NCBI RefSeq assembly: GCF_002113885.1 | Contig: NW_018407983.1 | Span: 1 to 64,000 of the forward strand | Direction of reading: 5' to 3' | DNA: 64,000 bases | Source: Mizuhopecten yessoensis | Taxonomy: Eukaryota | Part shown: in pieces, positions 14,990 through 51,775 of the stretch | How the letters are laid out: the number at the start of each line of letters is the position of its first letter | Numbering within the stretch: position 1 is the first letter of the stretch | The notes under the pieces: generated by a model | The model's input: the letters and a program-made list of their open reading frames with translations, nothing else | Database searches by the model: none | Told to the model about the DNA's origin: nothing | Made by a program: the position numbers and the translations under genes

Positions 14990-16450
14990 TTGGTAAGTAA
15001 TGTTATGGAATTTTTGAAAGAACCATGTGTGATCAACTGACTGCCTTTTTTAGTAATGTTTTTCATCCTTTGCTTGCAGCCTTCCGACCAGGATTTGGGT
15101 GTCAATCTACCCTGTTGCGACTTGTTGAGGATTGGCGTAGAGCCCTGGACAACCATGTGTATGTCGCTGCCATACTGATGGACCTGTCCAAGGCTTTTGA
15201 CTGTCTTCCTCTTAACTTGTTGGTCGGGAAGCTGGAGGCCTATGGCCTGAGCAAAGCCTCAGTTAACCTGGTGTCCAGCTTCCTGAGCAGCAGGGAGCAG
15301 CAGGTAAAAATTGGCTCCAAATGCGGTGACTGGCTGGAAGTGCTGAAGGGGTACCCCAGGGTTCTATTTTAGGACCCTTGCTTTTTAAAGTATTTGTAAA
15401 TGATATGTTTTTATATGCGACATCCTATAAATTATATAATTATGCAGACGACAACACTGTCAGCGAATCAAATAAAGACCCAGATGCTTTAAAACATAAT
15501 ATTGAAAATGACTGTCAAAATTTAATAGACGTGTTTAAATTAAACCAGATGAAAGCAGACCCTGATAAATTTCAGGCCATTTGTATAGGGAAACGTTCGG
15601 TAGATGCTATACCGTCTTTTAGTATTGGCGAAATATATATTGTTCCTGACAGTGTTGTCAAACTTTTAGGTGTGAACTTTAATTCATTTTTAAACTTTGA
15701 AGCTCATATCATTGAAATTTGTAGGGAAGCCTCAAGGCAATTGTCCATTTTAAAGCGAATTGGGAGTTTTTTAACCAAACAAGGTAGACTTGTAATTTAT
15801 AATTCATTTATTGTTTCAAATTTTAACAACTGTCCTTTATTTAGTCTGGCACTCTTGTTCCATGAAGAGTGTCAGAAAGTTAGAAAAGATACAAGAAAGA
15901 GCTTTAAGGTTTATACATAATGATCACAACTCATCCTTCAGACACTTATTCAGTATCACCAACAGCGACAGGCTTCATGTAAGGCGTCTGACGGAAATGG
16001 GCTGTGAGGTTTTTAAAATTATAAACAAAATTTCTCCTGAATATATTCATAATCTTGTAAATATTAAGATGTATAATTATGACTTCAGGAAAGAAAATAC
16101 TGCAAGTGCCCAGGGTCAACACTGTGAAGCATAGACATAAATCGTTTGCTTTTGAGGCCGCCCGGGTTTGGAACAGTCTCCCAAATGACTTCAGAAAAGT
16201 TGAAAACTTCAAAGAATTCAGGAGGCTGGTCCATTCCTGGGATGGCCCCATCTGCCTTTGCATTATCTGCAAAGAGTGATACTTCATACTGTGCCCTGGT
16301 TACCTCTGCCATCTGACATTTTGGATTGTGTGATACTTTTATTGTCTTATCTCATTTCTTATATGTTTTAAATCTGTTCTATAATTTTGCTGCATCTTAT
16401 TTGTATTTTAATTCCATATATTCTAAAAAGATTTTTTTTACAAAACTTGA
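14990..16450 (+). mobile_element. 5'-truncated, frameshifted CR1/L2-like LINE (reverse transcriptase and C-terminus)
   Basis: AFRPGFGCQSTLL, ILMDLSKAFD, GYPR/GSILGP frameshift, YADD, KLLGV, WNSLP and a terminal CLCIIC, spread across ORFs 15025-16279. Confidence 0.9.
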
Positions 16451-24237: not shown

Positions 24238-24843
24238 GCAGCTTTTTTTTGAGACCATTGATCCTTTCTTGATTAGCGGCGAGCAGTTGCCCTGTAAAAC
24301 ACATAACCAAGCACAACTTCTGTTAACATGGAATATCTAAAGTCAACCACTACCAGTCATGATTCTGTGACTCTGATGACAGACACTGGTGGCTCATACA
24401 ATTTTTCAGCCATCAGAAGCACATTAAACTTTCACTTTGTAGCATCCAAATAAGCAAGTCTAATGTTGTGTTCTTTAATGAAACTACCCTGTGATAAAAA
24501 TGGTAGTTATGATTTCTGTGTACTTGCTCTGATTGGCCTTATACAGTGAAGGTCCATCATGAGTACATACTGCCGGCAGTACTGAGACGATTCCTTGTTT
24601 AAGTAGAATCACTGTATCAATGAATCAAGTCTACGTTTTGCAGTCAAAAAAGAAATTGCTGATCACTTTTTTTTAAACATTCAGCATTTAGGAGGAAAGC
24701 TAAATGTACACACATACGTACAGAGTTTGGAAATTGGTGAACTGAGATATCCACAATACATCCATCAGAGGAACCATATACATAAACTTCAGTAAGCACA
24801 ATGATAATTTAGAGCACTATTTAAAGTACAAAAGAGCAATTAA

Positions 24844-25903
24844 ATTGTTACCATACAGAAAATACCAGGTATGACACTGATTGTTACCTTACAGAAAATA
24901 CCAGGTATAACACCGATTGTTACCTTACAGAAAATACCAGGTATGACATCGATTGTTACCTTACAGAAAATACCAGGTATGACACTGATTGTGACCTTAC
25001 TGAAAATACCAGGTATGACACCGATTGTTACCTAACAGAAAATACCAGGTATGACAATGATTGTTACCTAACAGAAAATACCAGGTATGACACCGATTGT
25101 TATATTACAGAAAATACCAGGTATGTCGCTGATTGTTACCTTACAAAAAATACTAGGTATGACACTGATTGTTACTTTACAGAAAATACCAGGTATGACA
25201 CTGATTGTTACCTTACAGAAAATACCAGGTATGACACTGATTGTGACCTTACAGAAAATACTAGGTATGACACTGATTGTTACCTAACAGAAAATACCAG
25301 GTATGGCACTGATTGTTACCTAACAGAAAATACCAGGTATGACACTGATTGTTACCTTACAGAAAATACCAGGTATGACACTAATTGTTACCTAACAGAA
25401 AATACCAGGTATGACACCGATTTTGTTACTTAACAGAAAATACCAGGTATGACACTGATTGTTACCTTACAGAAAACAGAAAATACAAGGTATGACGCTG
25501 ATTGTTACCTTACAGAACATACCAGGTATGACACTGATTGCTACCATACAGAAAATACTAGGTATGCCCCCGATTGTTACCTTACAGAAAATTCCAGGTA
25601 TGACACTGATTGCTACCATACAGAAAATACTAGGTATGCCCCCGATTGTTACCTTACAGAAAACAGAAAATACAAGGTATGACGCTGATTGTTACCTTAC
25701 AGAAAATACTAGGTATAACACTAATTGGTACCTTACAGAAAACAGAAAATACAAGGTATGACGCTGATTGTTACCTTACAGAAAATACCAGGTATGACAC
25801 TGATTTTGACCTTACAGAAAATACCAGGTTTGACACTGATTGCTACCTTACAAAAAAATACCAGGTATGACTCTAATTGTTACCTTACAGAAAATGCCAG
25901 GTA
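24844..25903. repeat. 36-bp minisatellite, about 29 copies
   Basis: Unit GATTGTTACCTTACAGAAAATACCAGGTATGACACT; explains the repetitive ORFs at 25087-25870. Confidence 0.95.
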
Positions 25904-28900: not shown

Positions 28901-31900
28901 ATCACAACCAGTAAGTGTTTTTATGTGACGTTTAGATGACTAGTACGATACGTACCCTACCACCTTCATAGGACAAATGACCAGTGAAGCGTATGTACAC
29001 AAAGGTGTAAAATATGTACGAGTTGGCAATATCAAATCAAAGTCAATTTGGATATGCAGAGAGTTAAGTCTGCACCAAACTACTTTCTACAAATGATATT
29101 TAAGTATGGTTTTCAAATGGTTAATAGTTTGGAGGATTTCAGAATTCCCTGTTGGTTTTATGTCTTTCAATATAGCAAAAAATCAACCCTCACTTTACAT
29201 AGTTATTAAACAGTATGTGCTTTAGTGCAATACACCACTTTGGTTTTCTTTAAAATACTTAGCAATCAAAGTACAGATTTGAATTCTGCAAGCAGTTTCT
29301 TTGCAGTGAAAGTAAAAGAATATCCCTGACACTCAATGTGTATGTGCAAATAACTTACTTTGGGTATCTGTTGTAACTCAGCTCTGTTCTTTTCTAAAAA
29401 AAAATATAAAAAATATTTATTAAATGTATTTGTTTGCATGCACAGGACACCAATGAAGTTAAAATCGAGATCTTCGTTATAAAACAAAACATGCATACTT
29501 TTTGTGTAACAAACAATACTAACTAAAACACAGTACAACTCTGTACAGTAGCATTATGATGATCTATTAATAACGGAAGGCACGAGTTTCTTCAGATATA
29601 TCTACAAAACTATTAAAGCAAATACATAGATTTGTTAATTGACAATGTATATTACAGATGAATATATAGAGGATATCTAATAGTGTCTTCATTACCATGG
29701 CAGGTAATGGATCTGATTATTCTTGGCAGTAAAATGAACTTATGTCTCAGACGGATTTTCTTGAGGCCTGCACATCATTAAGCTAACCAGGCTATGACCA
29801 TATGGACCACTTATAATTTTTCTCATGGTAGTTTGTAATCAGTGTCTTGATTGGTCAAATCAGTAAAAGCAATATTCTTTCATTAGTAAATTATCACTTT
29901 TCTAGAATACCGGGTAAGTAATTTTCGATATTTCACTGGTAAAAATGTAATAAAGACATGTATTTTAATCAGATTGATAAGTAACTGTGTTCTGGCTGTT
30001 GTGTTGACTTACCAAGCTGCTGTAAGAAGGTTTCCCCACCAGGAGACTCTTGAAGGAACTGAGTATATTTATGGACATGCTTCTTGTATCTCTGTAAAAT
30101 AAAGTGATCCGAATTCAGATCCTTGACTCAATTTCCTGTTGTAATATTGCCATTAATAAAAGTTTGCAACATATCTTTTCGATTTGCTTCTGCTGTTACT
30201 TTATGTATGGTGATGTATATCGTATCATCACGTTAATGTATCGTTGCAGCCATTAAGGGACCTACACATACAAAGATGGACAGAACGCACACACGGGTGA
30301 TGGTACCTTTGACATTTGGTTATAGATACAGTGTGCCAAATATGAATCACACCACATCATAGAGCTAACAAATAAGATCACCATCAAAGCAAAAGTTGTC
30401 AGTGTGATGTTAATGCGACCCGTTTACTTGACACAGGACACAGACACTAGGATGCCTTATAAGCAAGATTTAACAGTCAAAGTAAGCCTTTTTTACTGCC
30501 TCTGTAAATGTTCGACAAACTGTCACTTCTAAGTTATTTTAGATTATCTTCCCAAAGAAAAGTCTGAATATATTGATGCAGATTGACACATATAATCAGT
30601 TTGCTAGCACATCTGATGAAGAAGCACACTGTTACTCTTCAAATTCAAAATTCTTGGAATTAATATTGTATATTTGACAGCAGTTTTGTCTATGTATCTT
30701 TTTGCTAAGTTAGTTCGGCAATCATCAAGTTCGACTTTAGAGTTATAAACTTAAGTGAGTCAGCTAGTGCAGCGACAGTAATTACCCAATAAATAGGGCT
30801 GGAGGTTGTTACTCATCTTTGATAATAGGACTGGAGGTTGCTACTCACCTTTGATAATAGGATTGGAGGTTGCTACTCACCTTTGATAATAGGACTGGAG
30901 GTTGTTACTCACCTTTGATAATAGGACTGGAGCTAGGTTGCTACTCACCGTTGATACCAGGACTGGAGGTTGTTACTCACCTTTGATAATAGGACTGGAG
31001 GTTGCTACTCACCTTTGATAATAGGACTGGAGATTGTTACTCACCGTTGATGATAGGACTGGAGGTTGTCACTCACCTTTGATAATAGGACTGGAGGTTG
31101 CTACTCACCTTTGATAATAGGACTAGAGATTGTAACTCACCGTTGATAATAGGACTGGAGGTTGCTACTCACCTTTGATAATAGGACTGGAGGTTGTTAC
31201 TCACCGTTGATAATAGGACTGGAGATTGTTACTCACCTTTGATACTCTATGTCTATACTTCTGAAAATGCTCTCTTGAAATGTGAACCAAATATGGCGAA
31301 GGTGGAACCTCTGTTCTTTCATAAAAATCTTGACCCCAAGTTTTTGTGAAAAAGTCATATTCCCGCTTTGAACGCAGAGGATCATTAAGTGCCGCTGGAA
31401 GGTTCACAGAAGATTTGTATATTGTCCATTTGTGTTGATCTTGGACCACACTTGGTTCCTCTTTTTTGTGATTATCAGACACATGTAATGCCATCACTCC
31501 AGCACTGTCCTTTTGACCTGCAGTAGAAAATAAAGAATAATTTTTAAAACATCAGATAAAGATATATAATGTATCTTTTATAGTATACATGTACATTTCT
31601 CATACTTAATGCTTGAATGTTATAGCTAAATTTTACTCATTAAGATACAATTTCTATAACTACAAATGGCTTAACATAGGATTGTAAACATCAAATTTTA
31701 CTAGCAATAGACTGGAATACTATTCAACGTTTTTCAAACGCTCATTTTTGGAAAGATGTACGTATATACAAATGCAAGGAATCCAATTATCAATATCCCA
31801 GGGATAATCCTAGAGGGGGCCATTGACCCCTCAAAACTGAAATTGACCCCTCCATGTTCCAATTTTCTTTTTAATTTTACATAGAATGGCTCCTCTTACT

Positions 31901-33180: not shown

Positions 33181-33285
33181 CTAATTAAAATCATATCTTC
33201 ACATCGCTCCCGTTTATTGATATGTCAACGCGAGCCGACATATCAGTAAACGGGAACGATGTGAAGGGTTATAATTCTATATTAG
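33181..33285. mobile_element. Small palindromic MITE-like hairpin
   Basis: CTTCACATCGCTCCCGTTTATTGATATGTC / GACATATCAGTAAACGGGAACGATGTGAAG inverted arms, outer CTAAT...ATTAG. Confidence 0.75.
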
Positions 33286-34294
33286 ATTAATGAAAACGTT
33301 GCCGTTTATTTTTAATGCATTATTTTGAAATATCATTTCGTGTGACTAAGACCATTCAGACAAAAGAGTTCGTGCAGTTTCCAAAAGTATATTTCAAAAT
33401 TTGTTAGCGGGTTTTTATGGGATTTGCCAGAGGCCACTGGTAATTATATCAACAATAATTACCTCCAGACAACCAGTTATTGTTTAAATAATTACATTGT
33501 GCTGTATTTGCAAGTACAATTCTGGATATGTTTATCAATAAGAAAAACAAAATCGATGTAGTAAAAGCCATGAAATCTATATAGATGATGGAGCTCCGAG
33601 CGCAAAGCTATTTATAAGGGACAACTCGTACTTTTTTTGCATTTCGAAAGTTCCGGATTAGTGAAACCAACTTAAGTCTATGGGAAAAACAAAATATCCA
33701 TGCGATTTCCCGATTGTCCCAGCTACACAGCGACAACAAAATATAAAGTCTAAGGATTTTACGTTATGTGTTAATAAAATTCTTGCGGAAAATAGAAATA
33801 AAGATCAAAATGCAAGTGTACTTTCAAGCTTAGTTCAATCAAAAACATTCACAATTTTATACCCGCCCACTGAAGTGTATCTTTCAATCAATCAAGGTGG
33901 CGCCATTTTTCACAGCTAATCAGTTTCTCTCAAATCTGATTACAATCTAGAGCATGCGCATACATATGACTTGTCGGGAAGGAAGGCAGACATTTTGAAA
34001 AGATTGGAACAGTTGAAATTTGAAAGAAGAAAAAACAACAATATATAGTGTAAGAAGAGGAATAAAAGGTATAGCATAGGAAAAATCTTAACCAAGGTTT
34101 TCTCCAAATCGTTCGTAAAAAAATTCCCAACAATATCATGGATAGATATCAGCTCTTTGTTTTTAATTTCAGAACGGTTTTGAGTAATACATTTTCAAAG
34201 GTAAATTTAGAAGAAAACCGGCTAACCTAAGGGAATCATACCAAAAGAGAAACATTCAGCATGCGGTATCGTATACATGCATATATACACTTTA

Positions 34295-35437
34295 AACTGT
34301 TTCCGTGCGGTTTCACAAGATTTGTATCCCGTCAATATCCAACATCTCCGATTACATTGGGGTTCCACTCCAATGGCGGTCGTCTGCTACAATAGGGATG
34401 CGCGTCTTGTGACCAGACTGTACTGGAACAGTTCAGATCTCACGATATGTACTGTCTTGTCCGAGTTCCACTATTTAAGTTTGTTTCATGGGTCTGCATT
34501 TTATTTATGTAATTGAAATTTAAACAGCGCTGTCGACTCATTTTCAGAAGCGTTTCTGTTTGAAACGAGCATGGAGTAAATTGACATAAATAGATGTTTT
34601 TTGATTTCACCCTTGGAACATCAAATCTATACACATCTGCTTGAATAGTTTCCGGAAGTATATTAGATATAAATGTCCGTGAATAAATTTAGTATTTATT
34701 TTTCTTGAATGTATGCTCTTATTTGGGACCAAACTGTTTCCCTGCGGTTTCACAAGATTTGTATCCCGTCAATATCCAACATGTCCGATTACATTGGGTC
34801 TCCACTCCAATGGCGGTCGTCTGCTACAATAGGGATGCGCGTCTTGTGAACAGACTTTACTGGAACAGTTCTGGTTCCACTCTCAGCTGATGTATTATCT
34901 CTTCAGTGTTCCACTGACTTCATTGATGACAGAACGGTTCTCGACATCTGTAAGTTTAGCTCAAACACTTTACACACTTCGTTTGAAACCAACATCGTGT
35001 AAATTGACAACAGGAAATGTATTTCACTTTATCGCAGGGCGTCAAACCAATAAAGATTTTCTTCATTGAACTGTTTCCGTGCGGTTTCACACGATTTTTA
35101 TCCCGTCAATATCCAACATGTCCGATTACATTTGGTCTCCACTCCAATGACGGTCGTCTGCTACAATAGGGATGCTTGTTTTGTGACCAGACTGTATTGG
35201 AACAGTTTCACTCTCATCATGGGTATTATCTCGTCCGAGTATTTCAACGTTGTCGACATATGTCAAAGAGCAATGGCTCCACACACTCCGTTGCAAACCA
35301 ACATAGCGGAAGTTATTTTGTATTTTATTGCAGGGTGTCAAATCGATAAAGATATTTTATTCATATTTGTTGTTTGTAAATGTAATCTGTAAACTGTTTC
35401 CGTGCGGTTACACAAGGTTTGTATCCCGTCAATATCC
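34295..35437 (+). repeat. Repeat-spacer array of structured 139-nt repeats (34295-34433, 34732-34870, 35069-35207, truncated 35392-35437); candidate ncRNA or recombination-site array
   Basis: Three repeats of identical length and >90% identity with self-complementary ends, separated by diverged spacers of 298, 198 and 184 nt. Confidence 0.9.
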
Positions 35438-35989
35438 TTTTTAATATGTATGTTGTCGGAGATTCTCATGGATTCAAGGGAGTGAAAATTGAAAGACTGC
35501 AGTAGTGCTTAGACGATAGACAATGGTGAGTGATCGTTTAAGTGATTTAGCAATACACACCAATTTTTATTTTATTGAATAAATCAACCCTGCGTGTATG
35601 GGCCAATATATCATGTCATGCAGAGCGAATGCAACATTGTAAAAAAAGTACAAAAGGGGTATAACCCCCACCCCACCCCCACTCCCGAGTTTAACTTTTT
35701 AGCTTAAAATAAAAAATAAAAAAAAATTGAAACCAGTGTAGTTAAATGTTATTTAGTGCTATGAAAATAATTAATATTAGTATAAGAAAGATGTATCTGA
35801 CCTAGATATAAACAATTTACGTGTGTTTCAGGCAGTGAGTGAGCCATGTGACACATTTATTTGCCAGTAAGGAAGTTACATAAGTATAACCACAGACACT
35901 TGGATTTAGCCAATAGAAAGTAAGTGAAAAAAGGAAGCTCCGGAATATAACCCGCCTCTATACGTTTAATTAACCGTTTTACATAACGT

Positions 35990-38900
35990 TCGTAAGTCAA
36001 TGTCAACACATCATCCGAAAGTCAGTGTTTACACATTGTCCGGTTGTCACGTACGTCTACAAATTGTTTGTAAGTTATTCTCAACACATCGTCCGTCTGT
36101 CACTATCAGCACATAATCCGTTTGTCACTGTTTATACATCGTCCGTCTGTCACTCTCAACACATTGTCCGTCAGTCAATGTCTACACATCTTCCGACTGT
36201 CACTTCAGCGCATCGTCCGTCTGTCACTCACAACACATTGTCCGTCAGTCAATGTATACACATATTCCGTCTATCACTCTCAACACATCGTCCGTCTGTC
36301 ACTCTCAACACATCGTCCGTCTGTCACTGTCTTACCATTCTTCGACAGTCACTGTCGGTGAGTCATTGTGCACACATTGTCCGCCTGTCACTTTAAGACA
36401 TCGTCCATTTGTGATTGACAACATATCGTTCTGTGGTAACTGTTCACTGTTAAAAAATCATATGTCAGTCACTGTCACCACATCGTCCGTCAGTCCAAGT
36501 TAACAAACCATCCGTCAATCACTTAACTTATCGTCTGTCAGTCACATTCAAGACAACGTTCGAAAGTCACTGTCCACTCATTGTCCGCCTGTCACTGTCT
36601 AGTCTCTATCTACTCCTTTTCCGTTTGTTAGTGTCTATTTATCGTCCGTCTGTCACTGTTTAACAAACATCTGGTGCCTGTCACTTCCAGCTCATCGTTC
36701 AAATGCCACTGTTTACTCATCGTCCGTCAATCACCGTCAACAAATCGTCCGAAAATAAATGTCTACACTCCGCCTTTCAGTCATTCTCAACACATCGTCC
36801 GAAAGTCAATGTCTAACATCTCCCGATAGTTACTGTCAACATATCGTCTGCCTGTCACTAAAACACATCATCCGACAGTCACTGTCAGCTCATTGTCTGT
36901 AAGTTACTCTCAACACATCTTCAGTCTGTCACGATCAACACATCTTCCGACATCCACTGTATACTCATTGTCCGTCAGTCACCGTCAACAAATCGTCCGA
37001 AAGTTACTGTCTATACATCGTCCGTCCGTCACTGTTTTATACATCGTCTGTCAGTCGCTGTCTCAGCATCGCCCGTCAGTCATTGTAGATACATATGGTC
37101 CGTCTGTCAATGTCAAATTGTCAACACATTATCCGACAGTCACTGTCTTCATTTTGTCCGTCTGTCACTTTCAACATATCGTCTGTCTGACACTGTCAAC
37201 TCATTGTCTGAAAGTTATTCTCAACACATTGTCCGTCTGTAACTGTCAACACATCGTGCGACAGCTATTGTCAACATATGGTCCATCAGTCACAGTCAAA
37301 ACAACGTTCGAAAGTCACTGTCTACTCATTGTCAGCCTGTCACTGTCTAAACATCCGTCAGTCACTGTTTCAAACATCGTCCGACAGACACTGTCTCAAC
37401 ATACGCCCGACAGTCACTGTCTAAACGTCGACCGCAAGTCATTGTCTCATCTGTCGATACACATTGTCCGTCTGTCGCTGTCAAGTTGTCAGCACCTTAT
37501 CCGACAGTCACTGTCAACTCATCGCCCGTCTGTCACTGTCAACTCAATGTCTTACAGTTACTCTCAACACATTGTTCGTCAGTCACTGTCTAAACATCTG
37601 GTGTCTGTAACTTCCAGCTCATCGTCTGTCTTTGACTGTCTAAACATCGTTCAAACGCCACTGTTTTCTCATCGTCCGTCAGTTACTGTCAACACATCGT
37701 CCGTCTGTTACGGATTACAAATCGCCCCTGAGTCAATATATGTGCATTGTGTGGTAGTCGTTAATCACACATCGTCCGAAAGTCAATGTCATCCCATCAC
37801 CCAACATTAACGGTAAATACATCGTCCATCAGTCAATCTTAACATAACGGCTGTCTGTTACTGTCTATACATGTACACCGTCCGTTTGTCATTGTCTACA
37901 CATCGTAAGTCAGTAAATGTCAACAAATCGTTTGTAAGTCACCGTCTAAACATCGATCGCCAGTCATTGTCTCAACATTGTCCGACAGAAACTGTCAACA
38001 CATCATCCGACAGGCACTGTCTTCATTTTATCCGTCTGTCACTGTCAACATATAGTCCGTCTGACGCTGTCAACTCATTGTCTGTAAGTTACTCTCAACA
38101 CACCTTCCGTCTGTAACTACCAACATATCGTCCGTCAATCACCGTCTCAACATCGTCCGTCAGACACTGTCTACTCATTGTTTGTCTGTCACTGTCAACA
38201 TAAGCCGGACAGTCACTGTCTGCACATCGTCCGTCAGTCAATGTCTGCACATTGTGTAGCAGTAGCTAACTTCACATCGCCCGACAGTCACTGTCTTTAC
38301 ATCGTCCGTTTGTCACTGTTAACGCATCAACCGACAGTCACTGTCAAGACATCGTCCGTTCGTCACTGTCAACTCATCGCCTGTCAGTCACTGTCAACAC
38401 ATCGTCTGTCTGTCACGGTCCACAAATAGCCAATGTATGAGTCAAGCTATGTACATTGTGTGGCAGTCCTAGCTACACATCGTCCGAAGGTCAATGTCTT
38501 GCCATCGCTGTCGCATTCACTGTCTCAACATTGTCCGTCTGTCACTGTCAACACATCATCCGACAGTCACTGTCAAGACATCGTCTGTTTGTCACTGTCA
38601 GCTCATCGCCTGTCAGTCACAGTCAACACCTCGTCCGTCTGTCACGGTCTACAAACCGCCAATGTATGAGTCAAGCTATGTACATTGTGTGGCGGTCGCT
38701 AACTACACATCGTCGGAAGGTCAATGTCTTGCCATCACCCAACATTAACTGTCAATACATCGTCCATCAGTCAATCTAACATATCGTATGTCTGTTACTG
38801 TCTACACACCGTTCGTTTGTCATTTTCTACACATCGTAGTCACTGTCTACTCATTGTCTGTCATTGTCAACACATCATCCGACAGTCACTGTCTACACAT

Positions 38901-39170
38901 CGTCCAAAGGTCATTGTTAACACATCGTCAGTCAGACACTGTCTACACATCGTCCGTCTGTCACTGTCAACACATCGTCTGACAGCACCTGCTTACACAT
39001 CGTCCGTCTGTCATTATCACACTGTTTACACACCGTTCGTCTGTCAGTATCAGCACATCTTCCGTTTGTCACTGTTTACACATCGTCCGTTTGTCGCTTT
39101 CAACAAACACATCTTCCGTAAGTCACTGTCAACAAATTGTCAATCTGTCACTGTCAACATATCGTCGTTA
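35990..39170. repeat. Degenerate 25-bp satellite (GTCACTGTCAACACATCGTCCGTCT), block 1
   Basis: About 3.2 kb of tandem variants; source of the many Ser/Thr/His/Val-rich pseudo-ORFs. Confidence 0.95.
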
Positions 39171-39586
39171 TATTGATATAATAAATTCACATTATCTTAT
39201 TTTATTTTACCTGTATCATCATGTATCTACTTGTGGAAACCCGTTTATTACGCGTAGCACTGTTAAAGCACTTGTGGATTCATCAAACGACTGGTGGAAA
39301 CTGTATGTTTATGATAAAACCATTATGTTAAATAGTGGTATCTCATTGCAATCGCCTGTGGTAACCGTGGAATTCAACTTCAATTTGAAACAACTTATGC
39401 TTTTTGTAAAAATAATCGATTCCAATATAAAATCAAAAACTGATAAAACTCGTCTCGTTCTAATAATCCGTTATTTATGTGTCTTATACTGCTGCAACAG
39501 AAACAACAACTTGAAAGTAGAATGACATTTTACATTTATTTTATTACGTTCCCTGACATAGCATTGTTGATAGATATTCAGTTAAT

Positions 39587-40010
39587 GGTCTAGGTGGTGG
39601 AGTGAATAGCGCAGTCGCCTTTCACCAAGGCGGTCGGTGTTCGAGCTTAAGAAAATCGGAATAATGATATCATAATTATAATCGATCTACCATACAATTA
39701 TGATAGTATGATAGGATAGTCGGGTGGCACAGAGGATAGCGCGCTCGGACGTGAAAAAGGATAGTGTCGCCTGCCAAACTTTCAAACTTTTTTTATTTAT
39801 CTCAACACCTTTGAATTACAATGATATACAGAGATATATAAATACAAAGATTTTATGTACAGTAATTAGCCTGTCCGACCATGTGGGGTTTTCCGGATAC
39901 TCCGGTTTGCTCCCTCGCTAAGACCTACCGCGCGCTACCATCGGGGCCATTAATATTGACTAATATTAGTTGATATAATATTCTTTCATACTTGTTGTAA
40001 AATAATTTTT
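39587..40010 (+). mobile_element. Interrupted tRNA-derived SINE with V-like core (duplicate at ~52172-52595)
   Basis: A/B-box-like head (GGTGGAGTGAATAGCG...GTTCGAGC), core GTGGGGTTTTCCGGATACTCCGGTTTGCTCCC, tail TTGTTGTAAAATAA. Confidence 0.65.
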
Positions 40011-40749
40011 AATAAGTTTCAATAGAACATCCAATTAATACGATCATCGTTCGGCAATGAAATTATTGTGTTTTCAATAAGCATTTGGTTACGGTATTAA
40101 ATATTAAGGACTACTTTGAACATTAAAAGGATTAATTTCATTTATGAAAACGATATAAAAAGAAAATACAAGTTTTGAGAAGTTTCATTTAAAACGGTAT
40201 TGTTGAATGAATCTCTAAACTTAAATGTCCTTTTTTATTCACACATGGACATTTGGAATCCTAATCTGACATATCCTACGAGGAAAGCTCATACATTTCT
40301 ACGTCGATTGATTGCGTCTGTAAATGACAAAATTCCTTCAATTGGACATTATTATCTAATAACACATTCTGTCTTGTATCTTAAGTCATCACTCAACACA
40401 TTTTAACTAGACCATATCAAATCGGATTGCATATAGGCATACGGCCCCGATGTTAGCTTATATGAAATACACATCCATGTTCATTTTGCACAGACCTTTA
40501 AGAGATTTCATGACTCTTTACTACCACTGAAGACTACGTTAATTAAGCAGCAAACCACAACTTCTATGCTACCGCAAAAAGACAAAATACGAACTCAAAT
40601 TCGATAACATCGACAGAAATACCTCATTACCCCTATTACGTGACGCCATACAATTGTTATGACAGGAGAATACCCCGTCTTTACCCTAGGGTAGGACAGA
40701 CATATATTTCACTGGCCGGATGTGTGCATATCTCAGTCTGATGGAGAAT

Positions 40750-41835
40750 AATATAATCCTTCCCGTCCTTGATGGAACGATAGAAAAATCTAACCCCGAG
40801 GAGTCAGATCTCAAATGTCTAGCCCGAGGCTTTGCCAATGGCCTGACTTTTAAGAATCTTACACAGAGGTTTGAAAAGCTTCTGTCTTACTCCAAGAGTG
40901 AGGAATAGTGGTAATTTCATTAAATGTAAACGATAAATCACACCGGAAAAAAAGTGTGGATATACCTGTACAGGATAAGACAAATGTATATAATTCCTGA
41001 TCTACTGAAATGATCTATCTGTAGTATTTAAAACACAGCAGCATCCCAAGCGTCAGCGCCATAATGTCTATGTAGGATGGTTGCTGCTGCTGCTGCTGGC
41101 AGGGGAATATTTACCCAGCAGCAGCAGCACCCATCCTACATAGACATTATGAAGCAGCCGGTATATGCTGTATTTACCCAGCAGCAGCAGCAGCAGCAGC
41201 AGCAACCATCCTACATAGACATTATGAAGCAGCCGGAAAATCCGTGACGTCATCATAACGGTACCACCCGGTTAGGGTGGTGCTGCAGGGTGGTGCGGGG
41301 TGGTGGTAAGGATTATATAGGCTGGGGACTGCGCCAAAATCCTTGCTTTTGTACTACTAAACAGTGTAATACGCGAGATAATAGAAATGGTACATACATT
41401 TCTCCCACAATCACTATAGGTTTCCAACTCCCGATTCATTGGATAAACCTGCTAGGAGTTGGTAAACATTTTTGGTTACGCAATAGTGGGTAACACCCTG
41501 GACGTGATTTCATTGGTCAATTTTTTACTTATGACGTCACGTAACAATGCTTTGCGACGTCATCTTCCATTGTGACGTCATGATTTCCCCCATCGGAAGC
41601 CTACATAGTGTTTTTTCAAGGGAAACATATGGCTTTCCAGATAAGATACAAACGTGATGGGTGAAAAAGGATCCCAAACTCGTGATGATAGGTTATCATG
41701 TTTATCTAACTCTCGTTAGTTAATTTTAAAATTGTGAAAGACCCCTGGTAAACCTCGTGTCTTTATACAATTTGAAATAACTAACTCGAGTTAGATAAAC
41801 AGAAGAACCAACCATCAAACGTTGGGGAACCTCTA
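40750..41835. mobile_element. Non-autonomous DNA element(s) with hairpin-rich subtermini and CAG/CTG inverted repeats (duplicate at ~53347-54425)
   Basis: Palindrome at ~41670-41830, CCCGAGGCTTTGCC hairpin motif at ~40823, clustered TGACGTCA motifs and an inverted CAG block at 41060-41235. Superfamily not determinable. Confidence 0.45.
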
Positions 41836-42874
41836 TGTATATGAGTTTAAGTGACATGAAATATGTTATAAAGTCGAGATCTTGGTTTTATCTTACAGAA
41901 ATACAAAGCACACACTGCTAACAGACGAATTTGAATTTCAGTAGTTTATCCACCTATTAATAGTTATTTGTTATTGGGAAAAAGACTTCATCTACTTTGC
42001 TAGCCGGGAAATGCAACAGCATGTCTCCGAAATAACTATCGTGATCACTCATGTGTTCACAAACTGAAAAAAATCTGTTTCTTTGCCATGTAACATTTAC
42101 CTGTGTAATATACCCATACTTATACAGAGATATAAGAAAGCCGGAATCGTTATCGAAAACGGCTTTACACAAACAATATATCCGTCAAATTATTGAAACA
42201 TGTAAATTAACATCACTATCATAACGGTTTTTTTTTTCATTTACAAATTATTCCCGATTATGTTTTGCCGTAATATTTTTCTAAATGTTGACAGATTTAA
42301 GTTAACAACTTGAAATATTTCATAAATATATCCCTATTGAATTATCGTTTATGCTCACATCTTTGAAATAGAATTTTGTAAGAACAATAAACTGTTGGTG
42401 GAACCATTCAATGACACGTAGGAACAGTAAACTACAGCTAAAATGAATAACTTGAGGAACAATTCACTTACTTATGAAACGTTAATGAGTATATTGGAAA
42501 TATATTACTACATAAAACGGTGATCAATTTATTGCAAATTTTTCTGGCACCGGCTGAACTCTAATTAAATTAAAACTGAACATATAGAAAATGAACAGAT
42601 TCCCCCATGGGATAAAAAAAAAAAAAACATATAGCACCAATAACGTTTGCATTTTTATTTTACTTAAAACATACAACATTGCCTTAAGTAGATCGGAATA
42701 ACCATTTCATTATCACAATTGATCTACCATGTATTTATGATATTATAATAGTCGGGTGGCACTGTTGATAGCGCACTCGCTTTTCAAACAGATGGCCGGG
42801 TCTCGATTCCCCGATCGGACATGTACATGGGAATGTATCTGGTCACCTGCTCGACCACGCAGATTTTTTATGTT

Positions 42875-43430
42875 CCTGATTTTAGTACCCTGTACCCCGT
42901 ACCCCGTGCCCTGTACCCCGTACCCTATAGCCCATACCGTATACCCTGTACCATGTAACTCCTACCCTGTTACCCGTATCCCGTACCCTGTACTGTCACA
43001 GCACAATACTTTCTATACGATGTTCAGCGATGTAAATACTGTTCAAATATATCTTTGTTCGATCTGTTATACGTATTTTGTATCACTGCACAGTGGATAA
43101 CATCGTTTCTGGTGTTTAAAAAGGAATAAGTGAACTCACAAATCGAATTGATTTAAGAATTGATTGATAATACCCGCATTTTAAGTGTATTTCCCTATGC
43201 AGGCAAACACAATGTTTTGCTACGATACACATCAAAGTCTTGCATCTGTCTACGCTTTACCCTGTACCCCGTTCCATGTTCCCCGTATCCTGTACCATGA
43301 TTCATGTACTGATTATCTTCACGATACAATACGCATCACAGCAAAATGCATTCGATACGATATTTATCTTTATAAAAGGGAACGGGGTAAGGGATACACG
43401 ACACAGGATACGAGAATCGGGTACATCAGG
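42875..43430. mobile_element. MITE with (TACCCCG)n-like subterminal repeats inserted into a SINE remnant (duplicate at 55441-56003)
   Basis: Ends CCTGAT..GTACCC / GGGTACATCAGG; SINE head at 42750-42860, with the SINE core resuming at GGTTTTCTCCGGTTACTCC. Confidence 0.6.
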
Positions 43431-44002
43431 TTTTCTCCGGTTACTCCAGCTTAATACCATATGAATACCATAATAATCTTTTATTGTGTATACAATATGA
43501 ATATCGCATTACGAATATTTTTTTTATATCAAGTATTTTTTAAACGATATCTGAATATCAAAATTACACCGAATGTTATATTTTCCTTTAAACAAACAAT
43601 TTTCTTCACATTTGGTGAGAAGGGATATCCAAAACGATTTTGTTATTATTATATGAATCGCCGGTAGCTACTACCTTGATAATTTCCTTTCATGTATTTA
43701 AAGTTAAAACTTTAATCACAGGTTACGTCATGCATGGCCATTTCATTCGCGGGAAAAGATACACATTTCCTCGTCGATTGCCTGTATGTCTGAAGAAAAA
43801 TACATCTGACAAAATCTTTCACAGCATAATTTACTAGCCGAGAAATGCAACAACATTTCTCCGAAATAGCTATTATGTGTTCACAGAGATTAATGATAAT
43901 GAATAATGGTTGTGTAACCTACCTATATCTATCTATAGATATCAGTTGTTTATAACCGTGTATTGTTGGACGATAGACCATGAACGTTCATGTACATTCA
44001 AT

Positions 44003-45527
44003 TCAACACGCGAAATTCTTATCAAGCGTCTATTCGAATTCAACCTGTCTCAATTTAGTAGAGGTTTTGTTCCCGACATTGTTAATATTTTACAAAAATA
44101 CAATTTGTATCATGTTATTGATGAATTTTTGATGAGTGGTGTATTTCCAAACAAATGACAAATTCAATGGAAGCGTTGGGTCAATGACCATGTAAAAAAC
44201 TATGAACAGTTTAATTTATGTGAAAGAATGAACGCTGATAGGGACTTCTCTCGCTTCACTCTTTTACATAATAAGATACAACCGTATGCTATATGGAAAC
44301 TTGCTTTACGCTTTCCACAATACAGTCCATGTTTTAAGAAAGTTGTTAAACTTTGTGTTGAAATGCGCGATAATGAAAATATATATTTGTGTCATTACTG
44401 TGGATCTATGCACAAAGATACTATTATGCATAGTGTACTCGAATGCTCACACACAGAGCTATTACGAAACCAGCTCTGGTGTGTACTCAGTACTGTAAAA
44501 GATATAGATTTTGTGTTTAATCTTAATGTAATGTCTAATTACCATCTACTTCATGTTCTTCTTGGTGGTATTTTCAACTATGATTTATCTCCATATGAAC
44601 TGGAGGACTTTAGAATAAAATCCATTGTTATTATTACTAAAATTCTTCAATACAGTTGTATTATGTAATTTATCCTTAGATATTTGAATGTTGTATACTG
44701 AGAAATATGATCACAAATTTACTTGTGTGTACCTCACGCTTCAGCAAGATTAATACATGAAATACATATATTTTTGTAGTCATATTAGTAGGCAAGCATT
44801 CCCTACGTCTTTTCTGTTATACCATTGCACAATTGGGCTGCATGATTAGTGCAACTTACTACCATTCATAATATTGTTTGTATTGTATGAATTAATCTTG
44901 TGATATGTATTACTACAACTGAAATCATTGCATGGTTGACCTGTTTCTTCAAGTTAATCATTATATTGTATGTTGTGTATTTCACACCACTGTATGACTA
45001 TATTGTATGACTTCGTGCAACGGGTTCTACTCAATGTATGATTGTATTGTAAGACTTATGTTACAGTAATACTGTCTATAATAATGCTGTATGATTTATA
45101 GTGTGCTGCTTGTAATACTGTTTATTACAATGCTGTATGATTGCTTAGTACGAGAAGTGTATTACTGTCTATACTATCATATGATAATGTAGTTTGAGGA
45201 GTGTAAATATGTCTATTATATCAATGTATGATGTTATGTATGATTAGTGTTATACTGTCTATCATCATAATTATCATCGTATAATGACTGTAATAGTACC
45301 TATTATATCATTGTGTTGTGTTTATAGTACTTTATGGTATGATGCGGGTACTATTATTATTCTCTTATGTGTGTGTCTGTCCAGGTGCATGAGTGTGTCA
45401 CTATGTAAGGGTGTGACCATGATTGTGAATGCTCTTTCTTCTCTTTAAATAGTGTTGAATTGTACGTGTATTGTTCGTTATTTCTGTAAATCTTCATTTC
45501 TGGAGGAAATAAAGGAAATAATAATAA
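44003..45527 (+). mobile_element. 3' fragment of a non-LTR retrotransposon (C-terminal CCHC-type finger, long 3' UTR), copy A
   Basis: CHYCG...HSVLECS...LRNQLW...LLGG; tail GGAGGAAATAAAGGAAATAATAATAA; premature TGA at 44156-44158. Confidence 0.75.
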
Positions 45528-47460
45528 CATTATCTATCTTGTTTATATATATACCAATTTGAGGCATCGCTAAACATCTTACATTTGTATATATCGTAAT
45601 AAAGACGTTGAAGTCGAAATCTTTGATGTTGCACACTGCTAATGGATGCACTTAAAATTTAAGTATTTTTATCCACCCACTTAGTTATGGTGCTATTGTA
45701 AAAGGTGTTGGCCTAATTTACTAGCCGAGAAATGCAACAACATTTCTCCGAAATAGCTATTATGTGTTCACAGAGATTAATGATAATGAATAATGGTTGT
45801 GTAACCTACCTATATCTATCTATAGATATCAGTTTGTTTAATAACCGTGTATTGTTGGACGATAGACTATGAACGTTCATGTACATTCAATATTGTATGC
45901 ATTTGAAGGTTTAAAAAAATTCTATTTATATCTATATCCTGTCTAACTCACGGTAATTCCGCCGATCTTACCACGACAGTCGGACATGAAATCTGTCAAA
46001 CGCTGATTTCATGTGTTGACGAGCGATGCCAATAGAATGGTATGTAGAAAAGGGGATGGTTTCTTTCTTGTTTTCTTTTAAAGGGACACTGAGGAAATAA
46101 AGAAAACATCGCTGTATCCCACTGCATGTGTATCGTGAAAGGCGACTAATGTGGGGCCCCTGCAGAATCGAGTTTTTTTTCTGTGTCTTCTAATAAGGGG
46201 ACATGAACGGGGCCAAAATTGATCTGCTGCCCCCAATTGCAACACTTGGTTTAGTTTTCGTTTCCGATCTTTCCTGTCTTCTGCCTTTATCTTTCTACCT
46301 TTAGTTTCCGGCGGTGTCTCTCTAGGCAAACAAACTATCAGAAGGTTCTTTATTTACAAATTATTCTCAATCATTTTTGCAGTAAGTTTTTTTTTCTTAT
46401 AATTCAGTTTTAAGTTAACGAATGATTTCTTGACATATTACGTGAATAAATCACTACTATTTTTTATATTTGAGGAATTATAGTTTATCATCACAACTTT
46501 CGCGGTGCAAAAACTAGGATTTCATCATTGCGTAAAGACAGATTGACAAGTCATTTTGTAATATCATTATATTTCCCCTTATGTTCTCTTACCCTGACAA
46601 GCGTATCCACACGTTTTTCGGTGTGTGAACACTGATAAATAGAATCTCTCACCCTCCTTGGGGAAGTTTCTTAAATTGCCAAAACACGAGGCTTTGCCAA
46701 TCAAGGGGGTGAATGATTCTTTTTGTCTTGTTCACCTATGTTCACACATTGTGTCTCATAAACATAATGTATTGTTTACTTAATAGGCCAAATACATGTA
46801 TTGTTGAGGTGACGTCATTGTATTGTATACGAGACGTCACACAACTGTTATGAATAGGGGAATCCTGCTCAATATTGTATCCCTTGGGTTTTAATTACCT
46901 TATACATACCTCACATCAGGGATGGATTCTGTTACAGATGCTCTTCTAGTACAGTTATAACCTGTCCACTTAGAGTGTGACATCCATGTTTATGACAATA
47001 TAGTATGTGGATAGTGGTGGAAAATTCGTTTAAAATGATAACATATCTTAAAACCGAGATATGCTGTGGTGTATTTCCATTAAAGACATTTGAAATAACC
47101 AGTTTTGCCATATAAAAGTAATAGACATTTTCAATTAGTTAATAATTTCCAATTCAAAGGAACATTTTTTGCAGTTATATGTAGACCTAAATGTAGATTA
47201 AAATTTCCAAAAAAACCTCATCAAGTTCAGTTTTCTGATTGTTTAAGACAAGATACTTAGACTGGAAATTGATACTGGTACATAAATCTGAACTGGTCAA
47301 GTGAATTAGAGTCTATGATACATCTGTAACACACAAAACAAAACCATCAATCTTAACAGGTAGCGTCGACCACAGTGTCGATACACAGGGATAGGACATT
47401 AGTGTGAGACTGAGATCTTCAAAAAATAAAACCAACAATCTTAAAAGGTAGCGTCGACCA

Positions 47461-50400
47461 CAGTCACCGTTAACAAATCGTCCGAAAGTTACTGTCTATA
47501 CATCGTCCGTCAGTCACTGTTTTATACATCGTCCGTCAGTCACTGTTTTATACATCGTCTGTCAGTCGCTGTCTCAGCTTCGCCCGTCAGTCATTGTCTC
47601 AGCATCGATTGACATACACTGTCTACTCATTATCCGTCTGTCACTGTCAACATATCATTCGTCGTCCACTGTCTCAACATCGTCCGTCAGTCACTGTCTC
47701 AACATCTTCCGACAGTCACCGTGTACTCATTGTTTGTCTATCACCGTCAACATACGCCCGACAGTCACTGTCTTTACATCGTCAGTTTGTCACTGTCAAC
47801 TCATTGCCCGTCAGTTACTGTCAACACATCGTCCGTCAGTCACTGTTAAAAAATTGCACGTCTGTCACGGTCTATAAATCCCGAGTCAACGTGTGTAAAT
47901 GCATCGTCCATCAGTCAATCTCAACAAATCGTCCTTCTGTTACTGTCTACACACCATCCGTTTGTCATTGTCTACACATTGTCCGTCAGTAAATGTCAAC
48001 AAATCGTTCGTTAGTCACTGTCTACATATCGACCGCCAGTCATTGTCCCAACATTGTCCGTCAGACACTGTCTACTTATTGTCCGCCTGTCACTGTCTAA
48101 ACATCGTCCGTAAGTCTCTGTCTACTCCCTTTCCGTTTGTCAATGTCTGTTCATCGTCCGTCGGTCTTTGTTTTAAAAATCGTCCATCAGTCACTGTTTT
48201 ACACATCGTCCATCAGTCAATCTCAACAAATCGTCCGTCTGTTACTGTCTACACACCGTCCGCTTGTCATTGTCTACACATCGTACGTCAGTAAATGTCA
48301 ACAAATCGTTTGTTAGTCATTGTCCACACATCGATCTCAGTCATTGTCTCAACATCGTCCGACAGACACTGTATCAACATCGTCCGACAGACAATGTATC
48401 AACATCGTCCGACAGACACTGTATCAACATCGTCCGTCAGACACTGTATCAACATTGTCCGTTAGACACTGTATCAACATCGTCCGACAGACACTGTATC
48501 AACGTTGTCCGTCAGACACTGTATCAACATCGTCCGACAGACACTGTATCAACAGAGTCCGTCAGACACTGTATCAACATCGTCCGACAAACACTGTATA
48601 AACACCGTCCGTCAGGAACTGTCGATACACATCGTCCGTCTGTCACTGTCAACACATCGTCCGTCTGTTACGGATTACAAATCGCCCCTGAGTCAATATA
48701 TGTACATTGTGTGGCAGTCGCTAATTATACATCGTTCGAAGGTCAATGTCTTGCCATCGCCCAACATTGACTGTCAATACATCGCCCATCAGTCAATTTC
48801 AACAAATCATCCGTCTGTTACTGTCTACACACCGTCCGTTTGCCATTATCTACACATCGTACATCAGTAAATGTCAACAAATCATTTGTAAGTTAGTGTC
48901 TAAACATCGATCGCCAGTCTTTGTTTCAACATTGTCCGACAGACGCTGTATAAACATCGTCCGTCAGGAACCGTCGATCCACATCGTCCGTCTGTCACTG
49001 TCAAGTTGTCAACATATCATCCGACAGTCACTGTCTACAAGTCGTTCATCTGTTACTGTCAATTCATCGCCCGTCTGTCACTGTCTACATGTCGTTCGTC
49101 TGTCACTGTCAACTCATTGTCTTACAGTTACTCTCAATACATTGTCCGTCTGTCACTATCAGCACATCGTCCGTCTGTCACTGTCAATTCATCGCCCGTC
49201 TGTCACTGTCTACAAGTCGTTCGTCTGTCACTGTCAACTCAATGTCTTACAGTGACTCTCAGCACATTGTCCGTCTATCACTGTCAACTCATTGTCCTAC
49301 AGTTACTCTCAACACATTGTCCGTCTGTCAATATCAGCACATCGTCCGACAGTCACTGTCTACAAGTCGTTCATCTGTTACTGTCAATTCATCGCCCGTC
49401 TCTCACTGTCTACAAGTCGTTCGTCTGTCACTGTCAACTAATTGTCTTACAGTTACTCTCAACACATTGTCCGTCTGTCACTGTCAATTCATTGTCTTAC
49501 AGTTACTCTCAACACATGGTCCGTCTGACACTGTCAACTCATTGTCTTACAGTTACTGTCAAAACAGTGTCCGTCTGTCACTGTCAACTCATTGTCTTTC
49601 AGTTACTCTCAACACATTGTCCGTCAGTCACTATCTAAACATTGTCCGTCAGTCACTGTATAAACATCTGCTGCCTGTCACTTTCAGCACATCGTCCTGT
49701 TTGACAGTCTAAACATCGTTCAAATGCCACTGTCTACTCATCATCCGTCAACAAATCGTCCGAAAGTCACTGTTCTATACACCGTCTGTCAGTCGCTGTC
49801 TCAACATCGCCCGTCAGTCATTGTAGATACATATGGTCCGTCTTTCAATGTCAAATTGTCAACACATTATCCGACAGTCACTGTCTTCATTTTGTCCGTC
49901 TGTCACTTTCAACATATCGTCCGTCTGACACTGTCAACTCATTGTCTGAAAGTTCTTCTCAACACATTGTCCGTCTGTAACTGTCAACATATCGTCCGTC
50001 AGTCCCTGTTAACAAATCATTTGTCAGTCACTCAACTAATTGTCCGTCTATAACTGTCAACACATCGTGCGACAGCTATTATCAACATATGGTCCATCAG
50101 TCACAGTCAAAACAACGTTCGAAAGTCAATGTCTACTCATTGTCAGCCTGTCACTGTCTAAACATCCGTCAGTCACTGTTTTAAACATCGTCCGACAGAC
50201 ACTGTCTCAGCATACGCCCGACAGTCACTGTCTAAACGTCAACCGCAAGTCATTGTCTCATCTGTCGATACACATCGTCCGTCTGTTACTGTCAACTCAT
50301 CACCCGTCTGTCACTGTCAATTCATCGTCTTACAGTTACTCTCAATACACTGTCCGTCTGTCAATCTCAACACATTGTCCGCAAGTCACTGTCTAAACAT

Positions 50401-51775
50401 CTGGTGTCCGTCACTTCCAGCTCATCGTCTGTCTTTGACTGTCTAAACATCGTTCATACGCCACTGTCTACTCATCGTCCATCAGTTACTGTCAACACAT
50501 CTTCCGTCAGTTACTGTCAACACATCGCCCCTGAGTCAATATTGTGTGGCAGTCGTTAATTACACATCGTCCGAAGGTCAATGTCTTGCCATCGCCCAAC
50601 ATTAACTGTCAATACATCGTCCATCAGTCAATCTTAACATATCATCTGTCTGTTACTGTCTACACACCGTCCGTTTGTCATTGTCTACGTCAGTAAATGT
50701 CAACAAATCGTTTGTAAGTCACCGTCTAAACATCGATCGCCAGTCATTGTCTCAACATTGTCCGACAGACGCTGTATCAACATCGTCCGACAGACACTGC
50801 CAACACATCATCCGACAGTCACTGTCTTCATTTTATCCGTCTGTCACTGTCAACATATTGTCCGTCTGACGCTGTCAACTCATTGTCTGTAAGTTACTCT
50901 CAACACATCTTCCATCTGTAACTGCCAACATATCGTCCGTCATTCACTGTCTCAACATCGTCCGTCAGACACTGTCTACTCATTGTTTGTCTGTCACTGT
51001 CAACACAATATTGTGTGGCAGTAGCTAACTACACATCGCCCGACAGTCACTGTCTTTACATCGTCCGTTTGTCACTGTCAACGCATCATCCGACAGTCAC
51101 TGTCAAGATAACGTCAGTTTGTCACTGTCATCTCATCGTCCGTCTGTCACGGTCCACAAATAGCCAATGAATGATTCAATCTATGTACATTGTGTGGCAG
51201 TCGCTAACTACACATCGTCCGAAGGTCAATGTCTTGCCATCGCTGTCGCAGTCACTGTCAACACATCATCCGACAGTCACTGTCAAGACATCGTCCCTTA
51301 GTCACTGTCTACACATCGTCCGTCTGTCACGGTCTACACATAGCCAATGAATGATTCAATCTATGGACATTGTGTGGCAGTCGCTAATTACACATCCTCC
51401 GAAGGTCAATGTCTTGCCATCGCTGTCGCAGTCACTGTCTACGCATTGTCTGTCTGTCTGTCTGTCATTGCCAACACATCATCCGACAGTCACTGTCTAC
51501 TCATTGTCTGTCTGTCATTCTGTCATTGTCAACACATCATCCGACAGTCACTGTCTACACATCGTCCGAAGGTCATTGTCAACACATCGTCAGTCAGACA
51601 CTGTCTACACATCGTCCGTCTGTCACTGTCAACACATCGTCTGACAGCACCTGCTTACACATCGTACGACTGTCATTATCACACTGTTTACACACCGTTC
51701 GTCTGTCATTATCAGCACATCTTCCGTAAATCACTGTCAATAAATTGTCAATCTGTCACTGTCAACATATCGTGG
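47461..51775. repeat. Degenerate 25-bp satellite, block 2 (expanded; homogeneous sub-array CAGACACTGTATCAACATCGTCCGA at ~48350-48610)
   Basis: Same unit as 35990-39170, about 4.3 kb. Confidence 0.95.

Follow-up and report, generated by a model that had tools for sequence, protein, structure and literature searches.

The window analyzed here, 64,000 nt of Mizuhopecten yessoensis DNA, contains a short array in which four or more composite noncoding units, each consisting of a 139-nt foldback module (H) and a 184- to 298-bp linker (S), follow one another head to tail. We interpret this array as a selfish or satellite-like repeat that lacks target-site duplications and in which copying, probably by way of single-stranded DNA, renews the hairpin module, and we give this reading a probability of about 0.5.

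Organization of the array

All modules and linkers are read on the + strand. The three full-length modules H1 (34295 to 34433), H2 (34732 to 34870), and H3 (35069 to 35207) are followed by the linkers S1 (34434 to 34731, 298 nt), S2 (34871 to 35068, 198 nt), and S3 (35208 to 35391, 184 nt), respectively, and a partial module, H4 (35392 to 35437), comes after S3. The coordinates, the module length of 139 nt, and the spacings of 298, 198, and 184 nt given by an initial annotation of this DNA were exact. When the 46-nt 5' arm of H was searched at up to three mismatches, it gave four matches in the window, which is AT-rich (∼34% G+C), compared to none in 100 shuffles. Neither blastn nor nhmmer found H or S copies beyond the array in the whole 64 kb.

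H4 consists of positions 1 to 46 of the module, that is, the 5' arm plus 10 nt, with two mismatches (nhmmer E value of 2.8e-11). It had been described as cut off just after the 5' arm, and the truncation is real, but it does not mark where the array ends, since a TTTTT filler and then sequence resembling the start of a linker follow it (S4 remnant, 35438 to 35480, by alignment to S1 and S3). Positions 35443 to 35478 align nearly in register to positions 11 to 46 of S1; with a fixed 40-nt window, the sequence following H4 resembled S1 (P = 0.001) and S3 (P = 0.022), while the unrestricted search was not significant. Because of this linker-like start, we read the fourth unit as one that probably lost H positions 47 to 139 and the first few bases of S by internal deletion, and we dropped the idea that cuts 5' of AAC bound the array on both sides, at H position 1 to its left and at 46/47 to its right. 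On the left side, the 40 nt upstream of H1 (34255 to 34294) weakly resembled the linker end of one of two contigs from other loci (P = 0.0135); the comparison with the second contig end was not significant (P = 0.20). Neither edge of the array is demonstrably sharp, and no terminus can be read from them.

The linkers are diverged copies of each other

Local alignment against shuffles gave z scores of 15.6 for S2 versus S3, which are homologous over most of the length of S2, and 9.8 for S1 versus S2, and the first 30 nt of S1 could be aligned to S3. The homology of S3 to the other two linkers was found by pairwise alignment as well as with a linker profile, which recovered all three linkers and nothing more in the window. 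The linkers share conserved blocks in the same order, and units 2 and 3 are 71% identical over 410 columns. No conserved open reading frame was found in S1 to S3. The spacers being diverged copies of each other, the real repeat unit is H plus S, with a length of 323 to 437 nt. The proposal of a constant scaffold with variable, CRISPR-like cargo therefore fails. A CRISPR array was also rejected on the length of the repeat (139 nt, compared to 23 to 50 nt in CRISPR), on the length and mutual homology of the 184- to 298-nt spacers, and on the eukaryotic context.

The two parts of the unit differ strongly in their divergence. The H copies are 92 to 96% identical with no gap, whereas the linkers are 48 to 55% identical with gaps counted, or ∼60% for S2 and S3 by arithmetic from the unit alignment, so that divergence is several times lower in H than in S. 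The three full-length copies, on which this analysis rests, differ by 14 substitutions in total, 8 of them private to H3, the most decayed copy. Ten substitutions fell at paired positions, where 10 were expected; 8 break the pair, 2 leave a G·T pair in place, and compensatory changes are lacking, which bears out the earlier remark that none occur among the copies. Since the substitutions take no account of the fold, H is decaying freely in the copies of this array, and we infer that H is not kept by selection here. What needs explaining is why the decay of H began so much later than that of the adjacent linkers.

H folds well on one strand only

RNAfold paired positions 1 to 36 of H with positions 101 to 139 and placed small hairpins in the middle; the two arms make up 34-bp imperfect terminal inverted repeats. 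The outer stem, taken from the three-copy consensus, contains 34 pairs, with G·T at seven (8/132, 13/127, 15/125, 18/122, 27/110, 29/108, and 31/106) and A·C at none. It is interrupted by two pyrimidine-pyrimidine mismatches, C10/T130 and T28/C109, and by a CCA bulge at positions 119 to 121, and the whole fold holds 8 to 10 G·T pairs. The structure drawn by hand in the initial annotation, with its bulge and its seven outer wobbles, was thus reproduced.

With RNA parameters, the z scores of H1, H2, and H3 were −7.1, −4.3, and −2.7 on the + strand and −1.6, −1.6, and −1.2 on the − strand, H1 being the best-folding copy (minimum free energy of −59.1 kcal/mol). Similarly, DNA parameters gave −2.9 and −2.3 for the + strand of H1 and H2 and −0.9 and −0.6 for the − strand, which folds no better than shuffles. 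The outcome of 7 G·T versus 0 A·C pairs (two-sided binomial P = 0.016) is unlikely under symmetric decay of a palindrome. Each of the seven wobbles, several of which lie at CpG, could reflect a + strand C-to-T change in a once-perfect palindrome. Such a reading would fit either a single-stranded + intermediate or the persistence of changes only where the + strand still folds. H is a discrete, sharply bounded, strand-specific fold, which argues for a single-stranded + state, as RNA or as DNA, at some stage and against a plain pair of decaying terminal inverted repeats. The preference expressed earlier for a folded + strand over the decaying inverted repeats of a MITE is supported by the strand z scores and by the P value of 0.016.

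H is a dispersed family with nearly unique linkers

Contigs of two DNA runs, from two individuals of different studies, were placed on positions 33500 to 36000 at a likeness of at least 85%. Summed contig depth, which is not copy number and is used here as an order of magnitude only, was ∼13 to 20 on the unique flanks, 18 to 39 on the linkers, and 125 to 1087 in the H bins of the two individuals. This corresponds to ∼10 to 70 times the flanks for H and to only 1 to 2.4 times the baseline for the linkers. The peak lay over the middle of H2 (bin 34760 to 34843, 873 and 1087), the copy with the highest summed depth from elsewhere among the three. In run X1, 153 contig pieces fell on the locus, where about a dozen would be needed, and their likeness to the window ranged from below 90% to above 99%.

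Contigs from other loci depart from the window at 34295 and 34434 and run into flanks that are only loosely linker-like. Five of their downstream continuations agree with each other at 0.69, and one upstream continuation has CTCTTATTT in common with the end of S1. Two H copies are joined within single DNA contigs, and in one contig of a further run, X15, 232 nt separate two H pieces. The family occurs as H-linker-H at several loci, which we know through contig summaries only, and tens of H copies are present in the genome. At a likeness of at least 85%, no sister copies of any S were found in the contigs, so that each linker is unique or nearly so, and no joint skipping or adding whole units was well supported in those of two other individuals. 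Position 59 of H is T in all three window copies and A in most of the family, which hints that homogenization may be local rather than genome-wide.

The initial annotation had set a dispersed solo MITE with target-site duplications against its own reading. H is indeed dispersed and multicopy, but it lies in arrays and lacks target-site duplications, and it is therefore not a solo MITE. Exact-pattern scans with two invariant 21- to 24-mers of H, one against metagenome and genome contigs and the other against metagenome and viral contigs, gave no match; these collections have little or no animal DNA and are silent on animals. A protein search with the open frame through H gave no candidate.

Transcription of the array

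Run X15 is probably RNA, its size fitting a transcriptome. Its contigs extend from the second half of S1 through H2 and S2 into the start of H3, and others among them come from further loci of the family. None lies on the unique flanks at 33500 to 33919, 34088 to 34255, and 35180 to 35767. Coverage of S1-H2-S2 but not of the unique flanks makes some transcription likely, and low-level transcription through the arrays is probable; a discrete 139-nt RNA does not follow from this coverage. In the raw RNA run X23, only 2 reads were found among 12.4 million records (1.87 Gb), in a type of library that under-samples 139-nt hairpins.

Searches for known families, signatures, and enzymes

In agreement with the statement that H is no recognizable structured RNA, Rfam 15 gave no match to H at E values up to 1 in 4 kb. 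At E values up to 10 over 161 nt, the sole row was a chance match to L21_leader (15.7 bits). H found no support as a discrete small-RNA gene: TTTT is first encountered 66, 187, and 109 nt beyond H, which leaves no T4 terminator at its 3' end; TATA-like hexamers stand at −13 and −64 of the first two copies and upstream of neither of the others, thus at no fixed distance; and the raw RNA run gave the 2 reads mentioned above. Neither C/D boxes nor a tRNA head was found at H. A polymerase III gene was rejected on the missing terminator, fixed TATA, and tRNA-like head, and a SINE on the missing tRNA head. An H/ACA snoRNA was rejected because the ACA 3 nt from the 3' end lies inside the terminal stem and because H forms one long stem rather than two hairpins. 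Only a single CUGANGA motif was present, in S2 and on its − strand, and Rfam gave no hammerhead match; a metazoan retrozyme or hammerhead repeat, with the hammerhead core in every unit, was therefore discarded. The unpaired stretch after the 5' arm agrees with a CRESS-type nonanucleotide at 5 of 9 positions (CAATATCCA versus TAATATTAC), and this resemblance was set aside.

The analogy to bacterial integron attC sites was not sustained, because AAC and GTT are the outermost stem bases of H, with complementarity running inward and not outward, and because the R''/R' boxes are missing. Indeed, none of the 7-mers ending in AAC (TTTAAAC, ACCAAAC, and ATTGAAC) fits RYYYAAC, and none of those beginning with GTT (GTTCAGA, GTTCTGG, and GTTTCAC) fits GTTRRRY. 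An attC site was rejected for the lack of these boxes and also because the linkers are noncoding paralogues. An integrase, an attI site, and a promoter of the integron type were not found in the window.

No direct repeat of 2 to 10 bp flanks the H copies (CTTTA/CAGAT, GACCA/CTGGT, and CATTG/TCACT), and with no copy showing a target-site duplication, H is not a classical MITE. The missing target-site duplications are consistent with a nonautonomous Helitron or Helentron. The left and right flanks of the array share no significant inverted or direct match, and no HINE-like (Helentron) subterminal inverted repeats were found. After GTT, the linkers start with TCAC or CAC, which is suggestive only, and the end of H is not CTRR. 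The CvA/pearl elements of scallops were discarded because they have a 156-bp core and a different organization (PMC5874043), and a literature search found no scallop satellite or MITE with the H-linker structure.

Among ten long open reading frames tested in the window, Pfam recognized no recombinase, Rep, transposase, or Cas-like gene, which agrees with the earlier note that no Cas gene or recombinase is visible, and no autonomous partner or enzyme for H was found. The sole recognized product was a LINE reverse transcriptase fragment at 15001 to 15917, 19 kb from the array, split across two frames (RVT_1, E values of 4.7e-07 and 6.3e-09).

Proposed renewal of the hairpin module

Three accounts fail on the data. 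Coduplication of H and S followed by drift is contradicted by the contrast in their divergence, selection on the fold at this locus by the substitution pattern, and burst transposition of whole H+S units by the uniqueness of S. Recent copying of H together with S would predict sisters of S at 85% or more, and these are absent. What remains is renewal of H only, templated by other H copies. We thus propose that H would be renewed either by gene conversion started at the palindrome or by templated, site-specific reinsertion, bounded in both cases by its own ends, with the linkers as decaying passengers. H would then be a cis-acting module for the propagation or recombination of the family. It would most likely act as a hairpin of the single-stranded + strand; its strand bias suggests that such a form arises in the course of renewal. 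Such an action would be akin to that of the terminal hairpins of rolling-circle/HUH elements (Helitron and Helentron) or of tyrosine recombinase elements, which, in general statements, are said to employ terminal hairpins (PMC10288648).

Bivalve genomes are rich in short, scattered arrays of satellite-like DNA that are connected with Helentron-type elements, and the junctions of a clam satellite lie within palindromes (PMC7492417, PMC5139131). At the same roughly even odds as for the renewal itself, we place the present array with these short dispersed arrays, the Helentron-tied ones and those with palindrome junctions. It is like Cg_HINE, CvA/pearl, and DTC84 in forming short scattered head-to-tail arrays (PMC7492417, PMC3879986, PMC5874043), in lacking target-site duplications, in having a palindrome within the element, and in its bivalve host. 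However, their monomers are ∼150 to 170 bp long and homogeneous, whereas the unit described here has 323 to 437 bp, and its 139-nt foldback is conserved far beyond the remainder. In addition, HINEs have a short palindrome, placed outside the repeats, and neither subterminal inverted repeats nor microsatellite flanks were found here.

The phBglII400 satellite of Ruditapes philippinarum, which we compared by description, has a monomer of ∼400 bp, an abrupt drop of identity at the junction from >90% to 45 to 50%, and junctions clustered at palindromes (PMC5139131). Its palindromes have 10 to 12 bp, compared to the 34-bp stem of H, and no strand-specific wobble bias has been reported for it. The hairpins of rolling-circle and HUH elements (Helitron, IS200/IS605, IS91, and Replitron) are recognized on one strand, and these elements likewise lack target-site duplications and can occur in tandem (PMC10288648, PMC7492417). 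Their hairpins have only 10 to 20 bp, however, and their defining 5'-TC and CTRR-3' ends or a Rep gene were not demonstrated for H.

Several observations speak against the proposed renewal. A 139-nt hairpin is far longer than the described 3' palindromes of Helitrons and Helentrons, no enzyme and no HINE-type subterminal inverted repeats were found in the window, and T at position 59 points to local homogenization. The probable transcription seen in run X15 leaves some room for an RNA role of H.

Alternative explanations

The array could be a plain satellite shaped by unequal crossing-over, in which the palindrome is a conserved box of the monomer, dispersal occurs by segmental or circular-DNA reinsertion, and no single-stranded role exists. 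We regard this as unlikely, even though it would account for the head-to-tail units and the homologous linkers, for a left edge that is not demonstrably sharp (P = 0.0135 with one of two contig ends) and an S4 remnant that fades on the right, and for the T at position 59 in all three copies against the family majority, and even though published mollusc satellites have conserved boxes and palindrome-associated junctions (PMC5139131). It leaves unexplained the 7 G·T versus 0 A·C pairs (P = 0.016), the drop of identity exactly at the ends of H, at other loci as well, and the tens of H copies next to unique linkers. An RNA gene also falls short, and we find it distinctly unlikely that H is a tandem RNA gene or the precursor of a hairpin RNA (5S, snRNA, or miRNA cluster-like) with linkers that are fast-evolving nontranscribed or precursor spacers. 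The exact length of H, the sharp limits of identity, a conservation far above that of the spacers, G·U pairs on the + strand only, and ordered conserved blocks within the spacers would all suit such a gene, as would the presence of the probable RNA contigs of X15 on the array and on family loci but not on the unique flanks. On the other hand, no Rfam family was found even at E values up to 10, no T4 lies within 66 to 187 nt of the 3' end, a fixed TATA and C/D boxes are missing, and the conserved block upstream of H stands at unequal distances from it in units 2 and 3. Moreover, 8 of the 10 affected pairs are broken with no compensation, and only 2 of the 12.4 million raw RNA records matched, although 139-nt hairpins are under-sampled in libraries of this kind.

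The remaining explanations treat H as a mobile or recombining entity in its own right. A 139-bp classical MITE, with imperfect terminal inverted repeats of ∼36 bp and moved by a DDE transposase, might have landed in an older tandem repeat S; its small size, inverted repeats, sharp ends, tens of copies, and apparent age below that of S are as expected of a MITE. This is nevertheless very improbable, because no target-site duplication of any length was found at any copy, because H occupies the same position in all four units and has S-like flanks elsewhere, which random DDE insertion would not produce, and because the mismatches between the arms are strand biased. Least of all do we favor H as an attC/VCR-like folded recombination site that, together with S, forms a cassette shuffled conservatively by a recombinase encoded elsewhere. 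The likeness in architecture is real: integron hairpins are imperfect and ∼120 to 140 nt long, fold better on one strand, have unpaired bases and AAC/GTT, and are repeated between unrelated or unique segments. The Vibrio cholerae superintegron has just this arrangement of near-identical ∼120- to 140-nt hairpin repeats between unique segments, and the strand-specific fold with its bulge, the multicopy H versus unique S, and the absence of target-site duplications go in the same direction. But the AAC and GTT of attC are the inner part of RYYYAAC/GTTRRRY boxes, whereas in H they are terminal bases outside any R''/R' box. The would-be cassettes are noncoding paralogues, the host is a eukaryote, the integrase, attI, and promoter are missing, no recombinase was recognized among the ten long open reading frames tested, and no joint skipping or adding a whole unit was well supported in two other individuals. 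This cassette reading would have much in common with the renewal that we prefer; boxes and enzyme are what it misses. A related version appears rather doubtful to us, though less so than either the MITE or the cassette: H as the folded single strand that is recognized and recombined by an animal mobile system making no target-site duplications, which would build head-to-tail arrays by site-specific insertion or overwriting of hairpin modules. Its HUH nuclease or tyrosine recombinase would be encoded elsewhere, and the system would correspond, in a eukaryote, to attC/VCR arrays or to hairpin ends of the IS200/IS605 type.

Significance

If the ordinary reading of H renewal within a satellite-like array holds, the family is one more bivalve repeat family, and the main value of recognizing it is its annotation as a repeat and not as a gene. 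What sets it apart is a foldback module that is uniform genome-wide while the remainder of the unit decays and whose arm mismatches all keep one strand folded. The H family could thus serve as a compact test case for palindromic modules that drive copying or gene conversion in satellite-like DNA. If an enzyme partner were found, it might also offer a handle on single-strand-based transposition in animals.

Surroundings of the array in the window

By the look of the translations of open reading frames, the array appears to lie within a repeat-rich stretch of ∼50 kb between two putative lipoxygenase paralogues, more than 20 kb from either flanking gene. Translations resembling lipoxygenase exons occur at 6345 to 11244 and at 63595 to 63836, on both sides of the repeat-rich region. 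Within it, 36000 to 39200 and 47400 to 51800 are long blocks of a 25-nt minisatellite (consensus ∼TCTCAACACATCGTCCGTCTGTCAC) with a strong C-over-G skew, and the long open frames in these blocks are repeat artifacts. The regions 39700 to 47000 and 52300 to 59700 form a segmental duplication with an offset of ∼12.6 kb and many near-identical translations. Two further tandem arrays lie at 30792 to 31244 and 24825 to 25900; one has a 32-nt unit in 14 copies (88%), and the frames of the other repeatedly read YLTENTRYDTDC.

Closer to the array, a separate multicopy stretch was found at 33920 to 34087 (contig depth of 57 to 90 compared to ∼16), in which 34003 to 34014 is an exact 12-nt match to the 3' end of H3, ATTGGAACAGTT, that may be due to chance or may be a stray H end. 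About 1 kb upstream of the array, 33197 to 33266 forms a near-perfect 30-bp hairpin with a 10-nt loop and RNA z scores of −10.6 (+) and −11.7 (−). It has a weak Rfam match to mir-7131 (36.3 bits, compared to a gathering threshold of 74; E value of 4.6e-05) and is a candidate for either a foldback repeat or a locus resembling those of miRNAs.
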